64,000 nucleotides of DNA from Entomortierella parvispora E1425. Taxonomy: Eukaryota > Fungi > Mortierellomycota. Below the pieces are notes generated by a model that ran no database searches, was not told the origin of the DNA, and saw only the letters and a list, made by a program, of their open reading frames with translations. The position numbers were made by a program, and so were the translations under genes. Shown here one piece after another: positions 2,047 through 11,040 of this stretch (position 1 is its first letter; each line of letters starts with the position of its first letter). The DNA lies in contig BQFW01000013.1 of the NCBI GenBank assembly GCA_020891255.1, forward strand, positions 1,116,001-1,180,000, written 5' to 3'.

Positions 2047-4133
2047 TCATAGTTCTCGTTTACCGACACCGGGAACAAAAGTGGATGGGGTTTGAGGCCT
2101 TGGTTGCAGTGCCCCCCCTACTGTGACAAAAGGGAGGAATTCTGCTTGAGGTCGGTCATAGCTGGCACGGTCGTTTGCCAATTGCATTACCCAGCGCGGG
2201 GTCCAGCGCAAAGCAACTTTCCTGATGATATCGTTAATCAAGCTCTGTTGAACCAACCCGAAGAAAGTTGCCAGGGGATATGTCAAATGAATCATTAGAA
2301 CGTCATCCAGTCATATTGTACCTTTTTATCGTGCGGAAGAAAAAAAAAACTGTGGTTACCTTCTTATTCATGAGATCTCCGAGATGCCTGGACATTTCCA
2401 CCATGGACTGTCCAGTAGGTGACCGAGCCTTGTAGTAGGCGGCAAAAACCTTTTCAATCTCGGGTACGGTATTGCTCTTCAGCTCCACAAGGTAATTGAC
2501 AAGCGTCAGCACGTCATGGATGGCTTGGTTTGCTCTACAAATGCAGACAGAAGTTCCATATTAGTCACGTTCCAGAAGCCATGAACGCTGGCATGATGAG
2601 CGATAATGGTGTTCGTTTTGAATGCCTACCCCTGTCCTCCAAATGGCATTACTTTGTGGCAGGCTAGAGAAATGATAAAGCGACGAGATAAGTATAAAAA
2701 AAACAGTTCATCATACAGTGAGTGAGTGAGTGAGTGGGTTTTTCTCATCTAGTAGTCGATTATTCGATTATATTACCGTCTCCAGTCAGGACAATGCGAC
2801 CCTTATACCATGTTTTGAAAAACTGTAAGGGGTTGGAATGAAGAGTGCGTTAGAGAACCTGTCCAACGGGATGATCCGTGTCTCTGTTGTCACAAACAAT
2901 CTGTTCAAACTATATAGCTCGGCTAAAAGGCGAGAGAATGAGGTTTACCTTTTCCTCGAGCATGACTTTTGCCATGTTGCCTCTTGGTGTTTTGTCCATG
3001 AGGAAGCCGAGCTCACAGCCATAGGCTGTAGGAAGTTCCCGGAATCCATAGGACATGCTCTCGGCCACATCCTCGCCCCAGTCCGACTGTTTGAAAATCT
3101 GCTTTTCACCAAACTTTTTGTCCTTACCATGGTGTTTGACCACCATCCACGATATCCTGTTGTAAGTCAAGGGAATACACCAATACTAATGGGAAAAAAA
3201 GTTCACTTCATTAGTTGCCTTTTTACTCTTTTCCATTTTTTCCCCCTTCTGTTTTCACATTCTTGCTTACGGAGCACGCAGCGTCCTTGGTAAGGATAGC
3301 CTGAAATTCTGAGAAGGTACCACTGAGCGCAGGGATCTGGACTGGGTCCAGTGGGGCGGTTACGCCAACCAGACAATCGTATTGGTAGCCCATAGGGATC
3401 GAATCCTGCTTTGGGAGATGCCCCTTAGTCTCCAGTTCCTTGTGTAGACATTGCCTTACACTACTATAAGCGCCATCGCACCCCACCAAGATATCACAGT
3501 GGAAGATCGACTTGTCGGAGCAATCCAAGATGACCTCGCCAGAGTTTTGGCGGATCTGAAGGACTCGCTTCCCAAATTTGATCTTGTGCCTAGGGACTTG
3601 ATCGGCCAAAAGTGCACAGAGGTCCTTTCTTGCGATGATCTGACAGTACTCTCCATATCTATGGGTCGTTTAATACAATAGTACCCACGAGTGAGTACTG
3701 CAGCTCGTCTGAGACGGCTCAAAAAAAAAAGTCCTTCGTACCTTTCCTTGATATCCAACGGCTTCTGGCTTGAATATGTGCCAATCACTTCCATGTCTCC
3801 TTCACGGAAGACCATAGCCCCAAAAGGCTTGGACAATCTTTTGATCTCATCCAGCAGTCCAAGCTGTTGAAACAACGGCTGAACGGAGGGAATCAGACAA
3901 ATGGCACTGCCTGCAGATGTGCGATCGGGAGAGAAGGTTGTATTAATAAGAGAGTAAAACGAGATCCGAATTGAGCAAATGAGTCTTTGGCTTTTACCGA
4001 GGGGGTTATGGCAGTGGTGCTTTTCGAGAATCTCGTACTCTATCTGCGCCTTCTCGAGGAGGATAGCCATGACCAATCCTCCAATGCCCGCGCCGACTAT
4101 AATGATTTTGAGGTTCGCTGCAGCTGTGGCCAT
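2047..4133 (-). CDS. FAD-dependent monooxygenase (FAD_binding_3 / salicylate-hydroxylase-like), multi-exon
   Basis: GAGIGG Rossmann motif, DILVGCDGAYSSVR and RIVLTGDACHKVMPFGGQGANQAIHD are joined by GT-AG introns. The apparent frame break at 3640-3741 resolves with one intron (ERYGEYCQIIARKDL). Confidence 0.9.
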
Positions 4134-5791
4134 TTTAGGGCTGTATGTATGTAGGTACTTGTGTACAGATATATGGAAAAAAAGGGAGGGTTCAGATGTC
4201 AAGACGGTGAATTGAGATGAATGCGACGAAGGGAGGGAATGGGAAAGGAGTGAACGGAATGGACAGAATGGAAACAATGGGAAGTAGGATGAGCAGCAAG
4301 GAGGACGATTATGAAAAGGGAGGGAGAGGATGGTGGACGCCTGTTGTGTTGTGTTGTGTTGATGTATGAAGGAAAAGGACGATAGAGAAGAATGAGGATC
4401 GAGCTCTTTGCTTCAGCGCCGGGTGAGTTGTTCCTGAAATTCGGTTCCCCCTCCGCTCTCGAGCTTCCAGCGGTTGTGCAAGCGCCGTTCTGGTTCGCTG
4501 ATGTGGTTGACCCCTCTCATGGGCATGGTCTTTTTACTGGTTTGTCATCTGTCCTCTGGGCAAGCAAGCAGCTGGGGGACGCGTCAACGATCTGTGTCCA
4601 GCTCTTGTGATTGTCGCAGTTGTTGCAGGCACTCTGGAAGCAATTTTGATCGAGATGAACATGAACACAAAAACAGTTGCTGCAGTCTTTTTGGACAGGC
4701 ACCCACATGTCCAAGAGAGTTTGGTGCAAGTGAGCACCTTGCCTTTTCTTTCTTTCTTTCGGCCAACTGTTGCTATATACTGAGTTGCTTCCGCCCTTGT
4801 CTTCTCACGAGCACGGGAGCAAAATTGCTATTGGATTCGCAACAAGGGAAATCGGGGCAAAAGGAGGACAGGACATCGAGAACGAGAGCACTTTTTTTTT
4901 GTTGTCTCTTCATGCACAACACACAGCAAGAGCTCTCTTACCTTGCCTGTTCCCACTCCACTGACCGCCCAGTTCTTCACTTTGTGGATTCAAATCAAAG
5001 ACAAATTACAACCCGGGGTCTGGATTATTTCTTTTTTGCGTTCATGGTCCAAATGTTGTGGTCGCGTTTTCTTCCGATTGTGCCCTTGAAAAAAAGCATC
5101 CTGTCAACAATAAACCAACAACCATGAATTCATTTGTGCTTGGCAACAAACAAAAGAGGGGCAGCTTATCCAATTCCTCTTCTCCCACCTTCCGCTATCT
5201 TTTTTTTTTTTTTTTCTTGAAACGATGACTGGACATTCTCTAAACCATCTGCCGAGGACATTTCAGTGAACTGCTATTATCAAAGGCGATACTTGTTGGC
5301 GTTCTGTGTCGACATAGGTTGCCCGCCGGTAGACGGCTAATCTGCAAAAGTCAATGGTGGGAAAGAAAGACCCTGCATGGTCAATGTTTCACATTTGTAA
5401 TTTTCTCCTGAACAGGCCTTTCGCCCTCGAGATCAAAGACGCGCCATAGATCATCTAATTGACAACCATGGAGAGCCTTCCTTTTGGGGTCACTTCTCCG
5501 CCGATCTTGACCTCCTCTAACCGTTGACTTTTTCGTCTAATGAAAACTGTGACGAAGTAGATAGAAGGTCATAGACGTGTTCGACAGCTTATCAAAGCAG
5601 TCGGTGGATAAAAGCCCATAGTTCTTCGTCCTTTACATATAGTCGTCCTCGTTGGCATGATAGAAAAATAATCTTAGTGGGCAACAACTTTGAGTATCCC
5701 TGCGGAGGGGTATGACTGACAGTTCCACGAGTGGAGGTGGTCCAAAAAGGAAGGTCTCCCTGCGATGTGGTCAGAAAGCTGAAAGAAGGTA

Positions 5792-7596
5792 GAGACCATG
5801 CCAAAAACATCCATACCTCTGATTTGAATGTCCGGTTTCATATGGATCTCCACCCCTTAATAAAAGTTATGACTTTTCGCGCACTCAAGGGGAGAAAGGG
5901 ACGCCACTCAGCTCTCTGGAGATGCAACTCCCATCTCTCTACCATGTCGGATCCTCGATTTAAACGGAATGCAGCACGACTGACTCGTAATGAATACTGC
6001 ATTCTGGCGAACGTCCAAAGCTACTTGAATGGGACTGGGGCCTTCCACGAGCACCGTGGCAAAGTCACCGCCCGCAAGCGTCTTGCCCTCATAACTGGGA
6101 TCGGTTCAGATACGGCGCGGAAAGCTATTCAGTTTTATAACGGCGTGGGGGAGGTTTCGGAGAAACGCATTGGTCGACCAAAACACATCATTGAGACTGA
6201 CTTGGGCGCAGCCATTCGAGAATTTGTGTTGGCATGCAACAAAGATGGAGTGCCTGTGACAACGAATCTAGTTTTGAAGGAGCTGCGGGAAAAACACGGT
6301 ATCGTTTTCGCGAAGCGAACCTTGGTCCGTCGATTAAAACGGCTAGGTCTTCATTACGGCAAAGGAAGCAGGAGGAATATCCTCCATGACTCCCAAGCGG
6401 TGATCGACTATCGTGATGTTTACATCGAGCGTCGCCTCTCGAATCTGAACCCCAAGGGTCTTCCAATTGTTCCTGAGGTGTTCCTTGATGAGTCATATTG
6501 TCATCTAGACCATCACAGTCTTCGGACATGGTTGCCTTCTGGAGGCTCTGTCAATGAGCGAGGACGAAAGCCAATGCTTGTCATTTTCGGTGCATTCGTG
6601 GTATTCCGAGTTGACAACAAGCTCAGGGCAGAGCTCGTCAAGAAAAGCATCCTCATCTGGCCGGTCAAGGGTCAATTGCGTGGTCGAGAGGGTGGACGTG
6701 CCGCAGACAACGAGCTATGGAAGACTGTTCCTGATTTTGTCCGAGAGGCGGGTATTGCCCCTGACTACCATGACTACCACGGTAACTTTGATGCGGATCT
6801 GTTTGAGCGATTGTTTGAGGCTCTGTGCACAACACTCCATGAAGACTATGGGCCTTGTCACATTCACATGGATGGCGCCAAGTACCATGTCCGCGAAGAG
6901 AATCCAGTACCGAAAGCAAGCTCCTGTGTGAGAGATATCCATTCGTGGTTCGAAAAGAATGGCATAGAGCTACCAACAAATGACCGGGGCAAGATCAAGT
7001 CTAGACTCGAGCTTCTTGAGCACATCAAAGGTCTCAACATCCCCAAGACCTTTGCTTCATACCGAATTGCACACGAATACGGACACACCATTTGCAAGAC
7101 ACCTCCGTATCATTGCGAGCTACAGCCGATTGAAATGGTCTGGGGAATGGTCAAGAACCCAATTGCAGCCAATCCTAACTTGGACGAGACTGAGCTGTCA
7201 CTGCGAAACCGCCTTTTGGGACTCTTCGCTGGCATTCAGGAGTCACAGCTTATTGCTGTTTGGAAAAAGACTGTCCAGGTTGGGAGGGACTATCGGATTC
7301 TCTACGAAAGACGACTCGAAAACAATGAAAACTACAGTGAAAGTGACGATGATGACCGCGAATTTGATAGTGACACAGACAACAGTGAAATTTCTAGTGA
7401 CGAGGAGGCATAGTATTTTCTATTTTTTTTCAGTACCATTGTTCTCAGTAGACATGACCCCAGTGAGTCCAGTCCATCATGGAACATCGTTTAGAGTCAA
7501 TGAAGTTTTTAAAATCAGAAGAGAATAGAAAAAAAAAAGGCAGAGGGGTGTGAGAATTTAGGTTTTGTGAGGTATGGATATTTGTGGCAAGATCTC
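5792..7596 (+). mobile_element. Full-length IS630/Tc1/mariner-superfamily DNA transposon (DD86E, Sailor-like), 1805 bp
   Basis: Left TIR 5792-5819 GAGACCATGCCAAAAACATCCATACCTC matches the reverse complement of 7569-7596 at 24/28 positions. TA flanks both ends (5790-5791, 7597-7598). It encloses a single transposase ORF. Confidence 0.88.
5944..7413 (+). CDS. DDE transposase, 489 aa, intronless
   Basis: Probable start is ATG 5944; the track start at 5731 lies outside the TIR. N-terminal HTH and winged-HTH-like segments are present. The triad is FLDES (D 6487), HMDGAKYH (D 6871) and PPYHCELQPIE (E 7132), with 86 residues between the second D and E. Acidic tail. Confidence 0.92.
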   Translation: MSDPRFKRNAARLTRNEYCILANVQSYLNGTGAFHEHRGKVTARKRLALITGIGSDTARKAIQFYNGVGEVSEKRIGRPKHIIETDLGAAIREFVLACNKDGVPVTTNLVLKELREKHGIVFAKRTLVRRLKRLGLHYGKGSRRNILHDSQAVIDYRDVYIERRLSNLNPKGLPIVPEVFLDESYCHLDHHSLRTWLPSGGSVNERGRKPMLVIFGAFVVFRVDNKLRAELVKKSILIWPVKGQLRGREGGRAADNELWKTVPDFVREAGIAPDYHDYHGNFDADLFERLFEALCTTLHEDYGPCHIHMDGAKYHVREENPVPKASSCVRDIHSWFEKNGIELPTNDRGKIKSRLELLEHIKGLNIPKTFASYRIAHEYGHTICKTPPYHCELQPIEMVWGMVKNPIAANPNLDETELSLRNRLLGLFAGIQESQLIAVWKKTVQVGRDYRILYERRLENNENYSESDDDDREFDSDTDNSEISSDEEA

Positions 7597-7627
7597 TATA
7601 TGACCCCAACAAAACAAAAAGAATCTG

Positions 7628-7710
7628 TGAAGAGAGTGGGATTTGAACCCACGCCTACGAATAGACCGCGGCCTTAACGCGGCGCCTTAGACCAACTCGG
7701 CCATCTCTCC
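7628..7710 (-). tRNA. tRNA-Leu (anticodon AAG), long variable arm, no intron
   Basis: Reverse complement folds as GGAGAGA-TG-GCCGAGTTGGTCTAAGGC-G-CCGCG-TTAAGGC-CGCGG-TCTATTCGTAGGC-GTGGG-TTCAAAT-CCCAC-TCTCTTC-A. A T5 Pol III terminator follows at 7616-7620. Confidence 0.97.
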
Positions 7711-7814
7711 AACTCGATATTTTGATCGAGACTTCTGTCATTCTTAATTCAGAGAACACGTGACCCATAATAATCTTTATTTCCCAGCAAAATAGCTATT
7801 TCCCAGCAATAATT

Positions 7815-8115
7815 AAGGCATCTGCCCTGGTGCCCAAGACAATCCCACGCTGGCCGACCAGCGCTTACTGGCTTGTGTGCGTGGCCAGGTTCATTTATCG
7901 ACATTAGAAAAGATGGGGAAGATCCATTTTTTGTAACATTTTACTCTTCTTTATTACACGGTGACGAGCCGTGGCATTTGTTGCGCGGGGATCCGGGGTC
8001 TTTGTTCGTCTGGACCACGCGGCTTAGCTCAGGTTGTAGATAGTTTGGTATCGCACTTCACTTCTTTGGCTCGACACAGCAAATAAAATGTTGCAAAAAA
8101 AAAAAAAAAAAAAAA
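7815..8115 (+). mobile_element. Poly(A)-tailed retroposed insert (5'-truncated non-LTR retrotransposon 3' end, or SINE)
   Basis: Identical 18-bp direct repeats TATTTCCCAGCAATAATT at 7797-7814 and 8116-8133. AATAAA at 8082-8087. An A21 tract at 8095-8115 directly abuts the second repeat. Confidence 0.72.
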
Positions 8116-8195
8116 TATTTCCCAGCAATAATTTCTCACTTCGCCCGCAAGCCATGATGTTGGTGGCAGTAAGTCTACTCACCACAGCCATTCTA

Positions 8196-9093: not shown

Positions 9094-11040
9094 TCAGAGA
9101 CGGGTCAAGGTCATGACACCTTCAATATGTCTTGTCTGAGGGAACAAGTCGAACCCACGGATAGCCTCGACCTTGTAACCTGGGAGGCCCTTAGCCTCAC
9201 AGCGGTCAAGAAGTCCCTGAAGATCCCTTGCCTGCGTCTGGACGTTACAGCTCACGTAGACAACGCGAGCGGGCAAGAACGCCACCATCTGGTCCAAGAA
9301 TTCTTCGGAGCAACCCTTTCTTGGGGGGTCAATGATCAAAGCAGTCTCGGCTGAAGGGAAATCAATATGGGCAAAAATCTTGTCGGCATCATCCAGATGG
9401 AAGGCAGTTGTCTCGGTCGACAACTTGTTCAGCACAAGATTGTTGGTGGCACAGGAGATCGAGGCAGCTGAAATTTCCACTCCGAGCACCTTTTTGAATC
9501 CCTCGTGGCAAGTAATTCCAAAAAGACCAGAACCGCAGTATGCATCCACAAGGTAGTTGATTTCGTGGTTAATGGCTGTGGATGAGGACATATCGGGGGC
9601 AGCCTCTGTGCCTGATGCTGACTGAGAGGACGCGGTGAGGGGAAGGTGAAGTTGCTGCTGAACGTATCCAATAAGAGAGGGCAAGATGGCGTTGTTGTTC
9701 TGGAAGAAGGATCCTGCTGGATAGTCGAACCGGTACTTTCCAACCCATTCTGTGATGTTAGCCTTGTGGTCAGTGACGCAGATCTTAGTTGTTTGAGGAA
9801 CGGGGTCCGACTCTGTTCCTGGGACAATTGGGTTACTCTCACGAAGGAGCATCGTCGCGCCTTTTTTGTATGAAGCAATGTTTCTAAGACACAGATTGAA
9901 AGGTTAGATAACAGAGCTACCACTTTTGGAAATGCAGACAGCTTCGCCTCCAGGCTGATTCTGTGATACGATCGATCCACTTACTGTTGAACCTCTGCTC
10001 TCATTTTCTTCATGCCTTCGTTGACGATAGGGGTGGCGATAGGGCATTCCTCAATATCCATAACTCGACGCTGTCCTGCTTTCAAGAAACCGATCTGAAC
10101 TGGCTGGGCGGTTCCAGCAGACTGGTGCTTTGGGTTCTGTGCCTCAAAATGGGGTGTAATCTTCGTCCTGTATTGCGATTGAATAGGCGATCCGGAAACA
10201 GGGTCGACAGGAGGAAGAGAAGCAAAGTACTTGCCTAGAAGAAGGAAAGAATACCAGGTTAGCGGCTAGATATCAGGCATTAGCTTGATGAGATCCTCCT
10301 GGTTGTATCTAGTACCAGCATAGTTCTTGAAGGCATTCTCGACAACCTTGCGCTTGAAGATCATCTGGTCCGGGTATGAGATATGCTGCAGCTGACATCC
10401 TGCACAAGTTCCAAAGTATTTGCAAAGGATATCCTTCTTTTCGATCCTGTTTGCAGCTGGCTCGATCACTTCCACAAGATCCGCGTGTGAGTAACCCCTA
10501 TAACGGTGTGGTTGAAGCGAATATCAGTATATAAAGTTGTTCATCCAATTTTAAGTGATGAGATGTACAAGCCTTATACCAATTATGACGGTAGACTCTG
10601 GCCTTGACTTTTTCTCCTGCAAGCACAAAAGGAACAACAACCACCCATCCGTCACCACGTTCGGGTAGCAAAGCCAAGCCCTCGCCTGACTGAGCCATTG
10701 ATCCGATTGTCACCTCAAGTTCTTCAAAGTTCTGGAAGGGAGGAGGGGTTGTTGGCTCCCATGTCCAGTGGTCGTGTCCACGCAAGTCGATGATATCCTT
10801 CATCAGAACATCGTCGATATCCTTCTTTGTCAGTTTCTTCACTTTCTTGTTGCGTTTTGTCATAGCAGCAGGGGCTGCTGGAGCTGCAGCCGCGGTCGCG
10901 GGAGCTGGAGTAGTAGCCGCCTGAGCAGCAACATTGGTGGCTGATGCCATTACAGGGATGCCAGTAGAGGACATCGTTGACTTGAATGAAGAGAATGATT
11001 TGCAAGACCGTGGAAATGTAGTTGTGATGATGCGAAGCAT
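9094..11040 (-). CDS. TRM2: tRNA (uracil-54-C5)-methyltransferase, TrmA/RlmD family, multi-exon
   Basis: TRAM-like segment (VVVPFVLAGEKVKARVY), CKYFGTCAGCQLQH cluster motif, LVDAYCGSGLFG, IIDPPRKG, VYVSCN and FDLFPQTRHIEG. Confidence 0.92.

Follow-up and report, generated by a model that had tools for sequence, protein, structure and literature searches.

An intact leucine tRNA gene of the Mortierellaceae soil fungus Entomortierella parvispora E1425 is flanked by two unrelated young elements that, with a probability of about 0.8, reached it for different reasons: a LINE that targets Pol III genes on one side and an unguided DNA transposon on the other. The window, the whole 64,000-nucleotide stretch of contig BQFW01000013.1 that was analyzed, carries this tRNA-Leu(AAG) gene on the minus strand at positions 7627 to 7710 (ARAGORN; Rfam RF00005, 56.1 bits). 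A T5 Pol III terminator run (A5 on the plus strand; 7616 to 7620) was read from the sequence 7 to 11 nt beyond the tRNA 3′ end and has been left untouched by the neighboring transposon. Both junctions had been described in the initial annotation, which placed a TIR transposon 29 bp from the 3′ end, past the T5 run, and a poly(A)-tailed insert with target site duplications (TSDs) about 104 bp from the 5′ end; these positions hold, with measured distances of 28 nt (from the right-hand TA) and 104 nt, respectively.

The transposon is complete, spans 1,805 bp on the plus strand (5792 to 7596), and was recognized by an inverted-repeat search and from its TA-flanked genomic copies. Its imperfect 28-nt TIRs (5792 to 5819 and 7569 to 7596) lie within a TA duplication (5790 to 5791 and 7597 to 7598), and with the flanking TA included, the arms measure 30 nt each (5790 to 5819 and 7569 to 7598) and are 87% complementary (26/30 match). 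An intact plus-strand transposase ORF of 489 amino acids (5944 to 7413) matches Pfam PF13358 (DDE_3) at 33.1 bits (cutoff, 28.6). On the other side of the tRNA gene, a CACGTG palindrome lies at 7757 to 7762, 46 nt upstream of the tRNA +1 and between the gene and the LINE insertion point. The LINE copy itself occupies 301 bp on the plus strand (7815 to 8115), head-to-head with the tRNA gene and ending in a 21-nt poly(A) (8095 to 8115). It is 5′ truncated, retaining the end of ORF2 and the 3′ untranslated region, and shares 97.7% identity with positions 9496 to 9797 of the full-length copy. A direct-repeat search found its 18-nt TSDs on the plus strand at 7797 to 7814 and 8116 to 8133, in perfect agreement with each other. 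From the geometry of target-primed reverse transcription, the first-strand nick would have fallen at 7796/7797 on the tRNA-sense strand, 86 nt upstream of +1. The six other ORFs of at least 350 amino acids in the window gave no mobile-element family in Pfam (they matched host-type families, among them a ZIP transporter, a GH20 hexosaminidase, and GNAT, or had no match). By this crude test, it is plausible that the two insertions are the only mobile elements in the 64 kb, as had been proposed.

The window insert had 47 matches in the genome. Copies of its family range from 74 bp to 9.8 kb, all sharing the same 3′ end; they are variably truncated at the 5′ end and carry poly(A) tails and TSDs of 11 to 18 nt. 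The possibility that the insert is a SINE or processed pseudogene was discarded, given that other copies reach upstream into ORF2. A length of 5.7 kb was likewise rejected as full length, as the copy at C2:3481291-3491094 continues into an APE endonuclease domain and ORF1; at ∼9.8 kb, it is the one intact copy. ORF1 carries an RRM (Pfam), and a sequence search found no relative of known structure for it. ORF2 is very long (2,323 amino acids), with a low-complexity and coiled-coil insert, and encodes an APE endonuclease, a reverse transcriptase, an RNase H, and a CCHC motif (Pfam E values: PF03372 [Exo_endo_phos], 7.3e−11; PF14529, 2e−6; PF00078 [RVT_1], 7.6e−15; RNase_H, 3e−12). Its top match among solved structures, again by sequence search, was human LINE-1 ORF2p (1.7e−20). 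By both domain content and copy structure, this is an APE-type non-LTR (LINE) retrotransposon. The family is young; copies are 97 to 100% identical to the full-length element and their TSDs are perfect. Three metagenomic relatives shared 50 to 57% identity, and the ≤143 bp of 5′ flank on their contigs held no recognizable tRNA. A metagenome search with the ORF2 C terminus returned distant RNase H proteins only.

To assess where the LINE inserts, 29 sites were considered (28 sequenced loci plus C13:623353 by coordinates). A bona fide tRNA gene lay at 15 of these, and in all 15 the LINE was head-to-head with it. Under a chance model using the published count of 192 nuclear tRNAs (PMC8759367), the probability of 15 or more associations in 29 is ∼1e−50. 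At the 11 sites with a readable target duplication, the first nick mapped to a median of 94 bp (86 to 124) upstream of tRNA +1 and the LINE 5′ junction to a median of 109 bp (104 to 138; standard deviation [SD], 12.7). At least eight different tRNA species were hit, and upstream of a 5S rRNA gene (L057, gene at 3905 to 4025), a single diverged copy had its 5′ end at a distance of 92 bp. In two stacked arrays (C9:250.4-252.1 kb and C1:2879.7-2880.5 kb), the same TSD had been reused within the array, and the full-length copy lies ∼87 nt from a tRNA-like relic bearing A and B boxes. A repeat upstream of two seemingly tRNA-less sites was considered as a possible RNA gene and proved instead to be the 608-bp LTR of a Ty3/gypsy-like element. 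Approximately six sites had neither a Pol III gene nor a relic; therefore, either targeting has exceptions or some of the target genes have decayed. Comobilization of the tRNA with the LINE was also ruled out, since tRNA species and spacers differ between sites and a TSD separates gene from element. Thus, the retroposed insert had been correctly suspected of belonging to a Pol III-targeting family, and that targeting is active and oriented.

These insertions are best explained by target-primed reverse transcription that starts from a constant position on the 5′ side of Pol III genes. Counted from the mature 5′ end, the LINE endonuclease would nick the tRNA-sense strand ∼94 bp upstream, cDNA synthesis would begin at this nick, and a second nick would follow 11 to 18 bp further out, at approximately −109. 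Such a geometry would always leave the tRNA intact and the LINE head-to-head with the gene. Most likely, the Pol III preinitiation complex, or chromatin positioned by it, would serve as the anchor, because the targets include genes for varied tRNA species and one for 5S rRNA, while the spacers are unrelated. That LINEs inserted at random and survived only in harmless tRNA-flanking DNA would suit a compact genome in which some copies do lie elsewhere, but it is extremely improbable in the face of a tRNA spacing with an SD of ∼12 bp, the uniform orientation (15/15), the reuse of the same nucleotide in stacked arrays, and the high identity and perfect TSDs of the copies. A further alternative is that the LINE is anchored by a CACGTG-binding protein rather than by the Pol III machinery. 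The motif recurs upstream of most of the tRNA genes seen, and at nine sites it precedes the nick by 20 to 57 nt (median, 34 nt) with an SD of 10.5, as tight as the tRNA-to-nick SD of 12.0 at the same nine sites; moreover, at C8:2337059 it lies 29 nt before the TSD with no tRNA visible in the DNA examined. However, the usual spacing is kept without the motif at C9:661105, at C12:1679564, and at the 5S rRNA site, and a palindrome alone cannot account for the strict orientation, which makes this anchor improbable.

The transposon presents a different picture. It belongs to the Tc1/mariner/IS630 superfamily, as judged by its TA duplication, TIRs, and DDE_3 domain, and has exactly 13 genomic copies, all TA flanked and 99.9 to 100% identical; no MITEs of the family were found in the genome. 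Besides DDE_3, the transposase has a weak winged-HTH match, an acidic tail, and a putative catalytic triad of D182/D310/E397 with DD86E spacing by motif reading, and a sequence search recovered no relative of known structure. Two copies are at tRNA genes: the window copy, 28 nt past the 3′ end, and a copy (L010) inside tRNA-Gly(TCC), where it splits the gene at nucleotides 11 to 12 and destroys it. Within 1.5 kb of the other 11, no tRNA, other Rfam RNA gene, LINE, or LTR fragment was identified, and CACGTG was absent within 300 bp at 10 of these 11 and present at one. Three pairs of copies are within 17 to 54 kb of each other (P = 0.0015). The element is thus best described as a TA-inserting DDE_3 (putatively DD86E) cut-and-paste transposon with local hops, whose position 28 nt beyond the tRNA would owe nothing to Pol III guidance and at most something to a slight bias for open DNA poor in nucleosomes.

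The initial annotation had suggested that Pol III guidance might extend to this IS630/Tc1/mariner-type element, such that both it and the retroelement would be directed to Pol III genes. Two of 13 copies touching tRNA genes is indeed more than expected by uniform chance (P = 3e−5 for insertion in a gene or within 30 bp, 3e−4 if insertions are tolerated in one third of the genome, and 0.016 for a 1.5-kb window), and therefore some real bias to tRNA genes could persist. As an account of both elements, though, dual guidance is highly unlikely: 11 of 13 copies have no RNA gene, LINE, or LTR fragment nearby, just one of those 11 sites has the CACGTG motif, and the two tRNA-associated copies have no common position or orientation, one of them destroying its target. 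These two copies are also 20 kb apart, consistent with a single local hop, and the distance range used for the test was picked post hoc. An indirect bias, by which the transposon favors bent DNA free of nucleosomes (with active tRNA genes as an extreme example) without recognizing Pol III, would yield a slight enrichment at tRNA genes and would fit the same two copies and the long A/T homopolymer runs that adjoin several others; with so small a sample, and with four copies within open frames of at least 264 amino acids, it is possible but on balance unlikely. The favored reading therefore remains that of an unguided transposon beside a targeted LINE.

A second tRNA-targeting class nevertheless exists in this genome, namely, the Ty3/gypsy-like LTR retrotransposon, found 14 to 35 bp from tRNA 5′ ends. 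The proposal that Pol III genes may serve two unrelated classes as safe havens is hence borne out in that more than one class does so (the LINE and the gypsy-like element), but the DNA transposon is not the partner. The copy distributions in this genome separate the two elements of the window: LINE copies are not independent of tRNA genes, whereas transposon copies lie mostly away from them. Convergence of three unrelated classes, with the LINE at −94/−109, the Ty3/gypsy-like element at −14 to −35, and the Tc1/mariner-type element showing a loose but genuine preference, is doubtful. If true, such a preference would make this transposon the first Pol III-biased member of its superfamily.

A young LINE family with one intact copy makes it feasible to approach experimentally how a host complex positions a LINE endonuclease. 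The insertion site, outside the usual TFIIIB footprint and just past the conserved CACGTG, could also inform on how chromatin upstream of tRNA genes is arranged in early-diverging fungi. Integration that is position specific and spares genes also has practical appeal for delivering DNA to safe sites.

Several known systems invite comparison. Ty3 of yeast and DGLT-A of Dictyostelium, both LTR retrotransposons, integrate at the Pol III start site or close to it by means of an integrase. The LINE and the Ty3/gypsy-like element described here resemble them in that Pol III genes serve as their safe sites; unlike these integrase-dependent elements, which are of a different class, the LINE insert in the window would have used target-primed reverse transcription. 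The transposon conforms to Tc1/mariner/IS630 elements in its TA duplication, short TIRs, single DDE_3 transposase ORF, and local hopping, with a D-to-E spacing of 86 residues according to motif reading only. Dada DNA transposons are specific for small-RNA genes, and nearly every copy of a Dada family sits at the same specific position within its RNA gene (PMC3706591). One copy of the present transposon is similarly inside a tRNA gene; unlike Dada, the family has only two of 13 copies at such genes, in unrelated positions, with the other 11 elsewhere, and it has a TA duplication and a DDE_3 transposase.

The closest parallel to the LINE is in dictyostelid amoebae. For TRE5-A, contact between ORF1 and TFIIIB is known. 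The fungal LINE is likewise an APE-type element with two ORFs in a compact host genome, whose copies lie upstream of many different tRNA genes at a constant distance and with 5S rRNA also hit. It differs from the dictyostelid elements in its very long ORF2 with the low-complexity and coiled-coil insert and in its nearest named relatives, which were Rhizophagus LINEs (25 to 30% identity; best named matches in one protein search); among 8,000 candidates scored against the LINE, no Dictyostelium protein reached an E value of ≤1e−20. The non-LTR retrotransposons TRE5-A and NLTR-B land upstream of tRNA genes, at distances of 40 to 54 bp for TRE5 and 39 to 64 bp for NLTR-B, and both NLTR-A and NLTR-B carry RNase H, as does the fungal LINE (PMC5911963, PMC5006619). 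In contrast to these amoebal elements, the LINE resides in a Mortierellaceae fungus and lands further out, with its 5′ junction at approximately −109 and the first nick at approximately −94. In the literature searched, reports of LINEs that home to Pol III genes were confined to dictyostelid amoebae (TRE5, NLTR-B; PMC5006619, PMC5911963). The fungal LINE would represent a further, and probably independent, invention of Pol III homing, at a different landing distance.

The single tRNA gene found by either ARAGORN or Rfam in the window (G000:C13:1116001-1180000; assembly of 38.9 Mb in 20 contigs) was a minus-strand tRNA-Leu(AAG) at 7627-7710, on which both tools agreed. A T5 run could be read in the sequence 7 to 11 nt beyond its 3′ end. 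The DNA transposon (5792-7596; 1,805 bp) lay on the 3′ side of this gene. Its terminal inverted repeats were imperfect, a TA stood on either side, and its 489-aa ORF scored above the Pfam DDE_3 cut-off. On the 5′ side, 104 nt off, was the 301-bp poly(A) insert (7815-8115), which ended in a 3′-terminal run of 21 A and was bracketed by a perfect 18-nt duplication. All measurements of the initial annotation at this locus proved correct on re-measurement.

The 301-bp insert had at least 47 genomic matches. Similarity ran on upstream of the query in most copies, the 5′ stop points were many and differing, and one complete copy of ∼9.8 kb was found (C2:3481291-3491094); the insert thus represents a LINE tail. 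ORF1 of the complete copy encodes 748 aa with an RRM and overlaps by 8 nt an ORF2 of 2,323 aa, which carries an Exo_endo_phos endonuclease, RVT_1, RNase H, a CCHC motif, and a long low-complexity and coiled-coil stretch. The best relative with a solved structure was human LINE-1 ORF2p. Copies fell into groups sharing ∼97 to 100%, 91 to 95%, or 78 to 89% identity with the full-length copy, the window copy being 97.7% identical to positions 9496-9797; TSDs were 11 to 18 nt and poly(A) tails were intact. The copies in C14:2232600-2243988 and C6:13644-24899 had identical flanks on both sides and are therefore one insertion carried in a segmental duplication, not two events. At tRNA sites, first-family copies repeatedly had another LINE-like 3′ end (ending ...AGATCAAAGTTGCAATAAAAAAA) next to them, in the flanks of the fetched loci L044, L047, and L057 (e.g., directly after the TSD in C12:752858-756121), which suggests a further tRNA-associated LINE family in this genome.

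Fetched loci were merged into 28 pieces, in which LINE segments were mapped and tRNAs were scanned with introns allowed; an intron-containing tRNA at C9:663706 was confirmed by Rfam. In 14 of the 28 pieces, the nearest LINE copy had its 5′ end facing a bona fide tRNA, and a 15th site was identified by coordinates alone (LINE at C13:622948-623239, minus strand; tRNA at C13:623353, plus strand). The arrangement was head-to-head in 15/15. Targets included Leu-AAG (three genes), Leu-TAA, Asn, Ala-AGC, Ala-CGC, Val, Gly, Arg-ACG (two genes), and one intron-bearing tRNA, and the spacers between tRNA and LINE were unrelated in sequence among sites. TSDs were readable at 11 sites, and the tRNA-side edge was taken as the first-strand nick under target-primed reverse transcription. 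This inferred nick lay 86 to 124 nt (median, 94) and the LINE 5′ junction 104 to 138 nt (median, 109) upstream of tRNA +1, the longer distances coinciding with oligo(A) left by earlier insertions. Arrays on C9 and C1 held three or four copies with the same TSD between them, as expected if one position was hit again and again. Using the 192 nuclear tRNA genes published for strain E1425 (genome announcement, PMC8759367), a random, randomly oriented junction would fall in the 56-bp window with a chance of 1.4e−4, giving P ∼1e−50 for at least 15 of 29 sites. That the insert belongs to a Pol III-guided integration system, as had been proposed, is supported by this count together with the fixed distance and orientation. 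Passive survival of random insertions was also considered and rejected, as it cannot explain how copies so young share this spacing and orientation and reuse the same sites.

A LINE copy of a diverged subfamily ended 92 nt upstream of a 5S rRNA gene (L057:3905-4025; C16:100404-100524), again head-to-head and with no CACGTG between. A tRNA-like relic was located ∼87 nt from the full-length LINE (L058:2396-2470, minus-strand reading; C2, about 3491190-3491270); it had good A and B boxes and a broken acceptor stem, and was called as a tRNA by neither ARAGORN nor Rfam. At two LINE sites with no tRNA, the common upstream repeat was a 608-bp LTR (TG...CA, preceded by a purine tract), exemplified by L040:797-1404 (C8:2336355-2336962), with 24 genomic matches listed. 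Its parent element carried an integrase-like C-terminus with weak Pfam matches. LTR pairs ∼5.5 kb apart were 100% identical, and this gypsy-like retrotransposon is very young. By coordinates, the outer end of the 5′ LTR and the 5′ end of a listed tRNA were 14 to 35 nt apart at five places, making it a second, Ty3-like tRNA-targeting element in the genome. At the two LINE sites this element probably lies between the LINE and its tRNA, the tRNA side falling beyond the fetched sequence; the LINE TSD starts 81 nt beyond the LTR end, which fits the usual distance. B-box-like relics were identified at three or four further tRNA-less sites, and at ∼6 sites no Pol III gene or relic was seen in the fetched sequence.

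The motif CACGTG(A), present in the window at 7757-7762, was also seen in front of tRNAs in the fetched loci. Of the 18 tRNA genes seen, ∼14 had CACGTG 46 to 108 nt upstream, compared with ∼0.3 by chance; two of these genes lacked an adjacent LINE. The motif may control tRNA genes from an upstream position in this fungus. The motif lies 20 to 57 nt before the inferred nick, and a factor bound to it could itself anchor the LINE. This appears improbable, however, as the usual spacing was kept without CACGTG at the 5S site and at two of the tRNA sites, and a palindrome cannot set LINE orientation. For these reasons, the Pol III complex, which is asymmetric, or chromatin that it phases is favored as the probable anchor.

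A whole-genome search identified 13 full-length copies of the DNA transposon (99.9 to 100% identity), eight identical and five with a 1-bp insertion within the ORF, and TA flanked both ends in 13/13. A genome-wide degenerate TIR pattern matched exactly 26 transposon ends; thus, there were no MITEs or solo ends. From motif reading, the putative transposase triad would be D182, D310, and E397 (D310-E397 spacing, 86), as a resemblance only. Three copy pairs lay 17 to 54 kb apart against 0.22 expected (P = 0.0015), a signature of local hopping. By direct scan, the window copy alone had a tRNA within 1.5 kb, and no other Rfam RNA genes were near any of the 13. When the 13 empty sites were rebuilt in silico, the copy in L010 (C13:1101865-1103674, 12.3 kb before the window) was found to split a tRNA-Gly(TCC), with the TA at nt 11-12; its removal made the gene callable again. 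Two of 13 copies therefore touched tRNA genes (uniform null: P = 3e−5 in a gene or within 30 bp; P = 0.016 within 1.5 kb), an excess real enough to mention. The two positions were unrelated, one 28 nt downstream and the other inside the gene, where insertion destroys the target. At the other 11 sites, no LINE or LTR fragments were present, only one had CACGTG within 300 bp, and four copies lay inside open frames of at least 264 aa. The element is best read as TA-targeting, at most loosely preferring open DNA. The idea that two element classes use Pol III genes as safe havens thus holds for the retroelement; for the DNA transposon, with 11/13 copies away from tRNA genes and two hits sharing no common position, Pol III guidance was not supported.

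The nearest named relatives of the LINE were Rhizophagus LINEs. Another relative, with an ORF2 57% identical, is on a metagenome contig (L059:1-143; ERZ27249861 k141_1631564) and starts ∼45 nt after a sense-oriented B-box-like hairpin, which was not called by Rfam and says nothing about targeting by that relative. Full-text literature searches returned no case of a fungal tRNA-targeting LINE. A review table lists tRNA-targeting non-LTR elements from dictyostelids only (PMC5911963), and TRE-like elements were reportedly not found outside that group (PMC5006619). Among these, TRE5 inserts 40 to 54 bp upstream, also at 5S genes, TRE3 inserts downstream, and NLTR-A and NLTR-B insert at 2 to 6 and 39 to 64 bp, respectively (PMC5911963). 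The LINE described here behaves like TRE5 and NLTR-B, landing approximately twice as far out.
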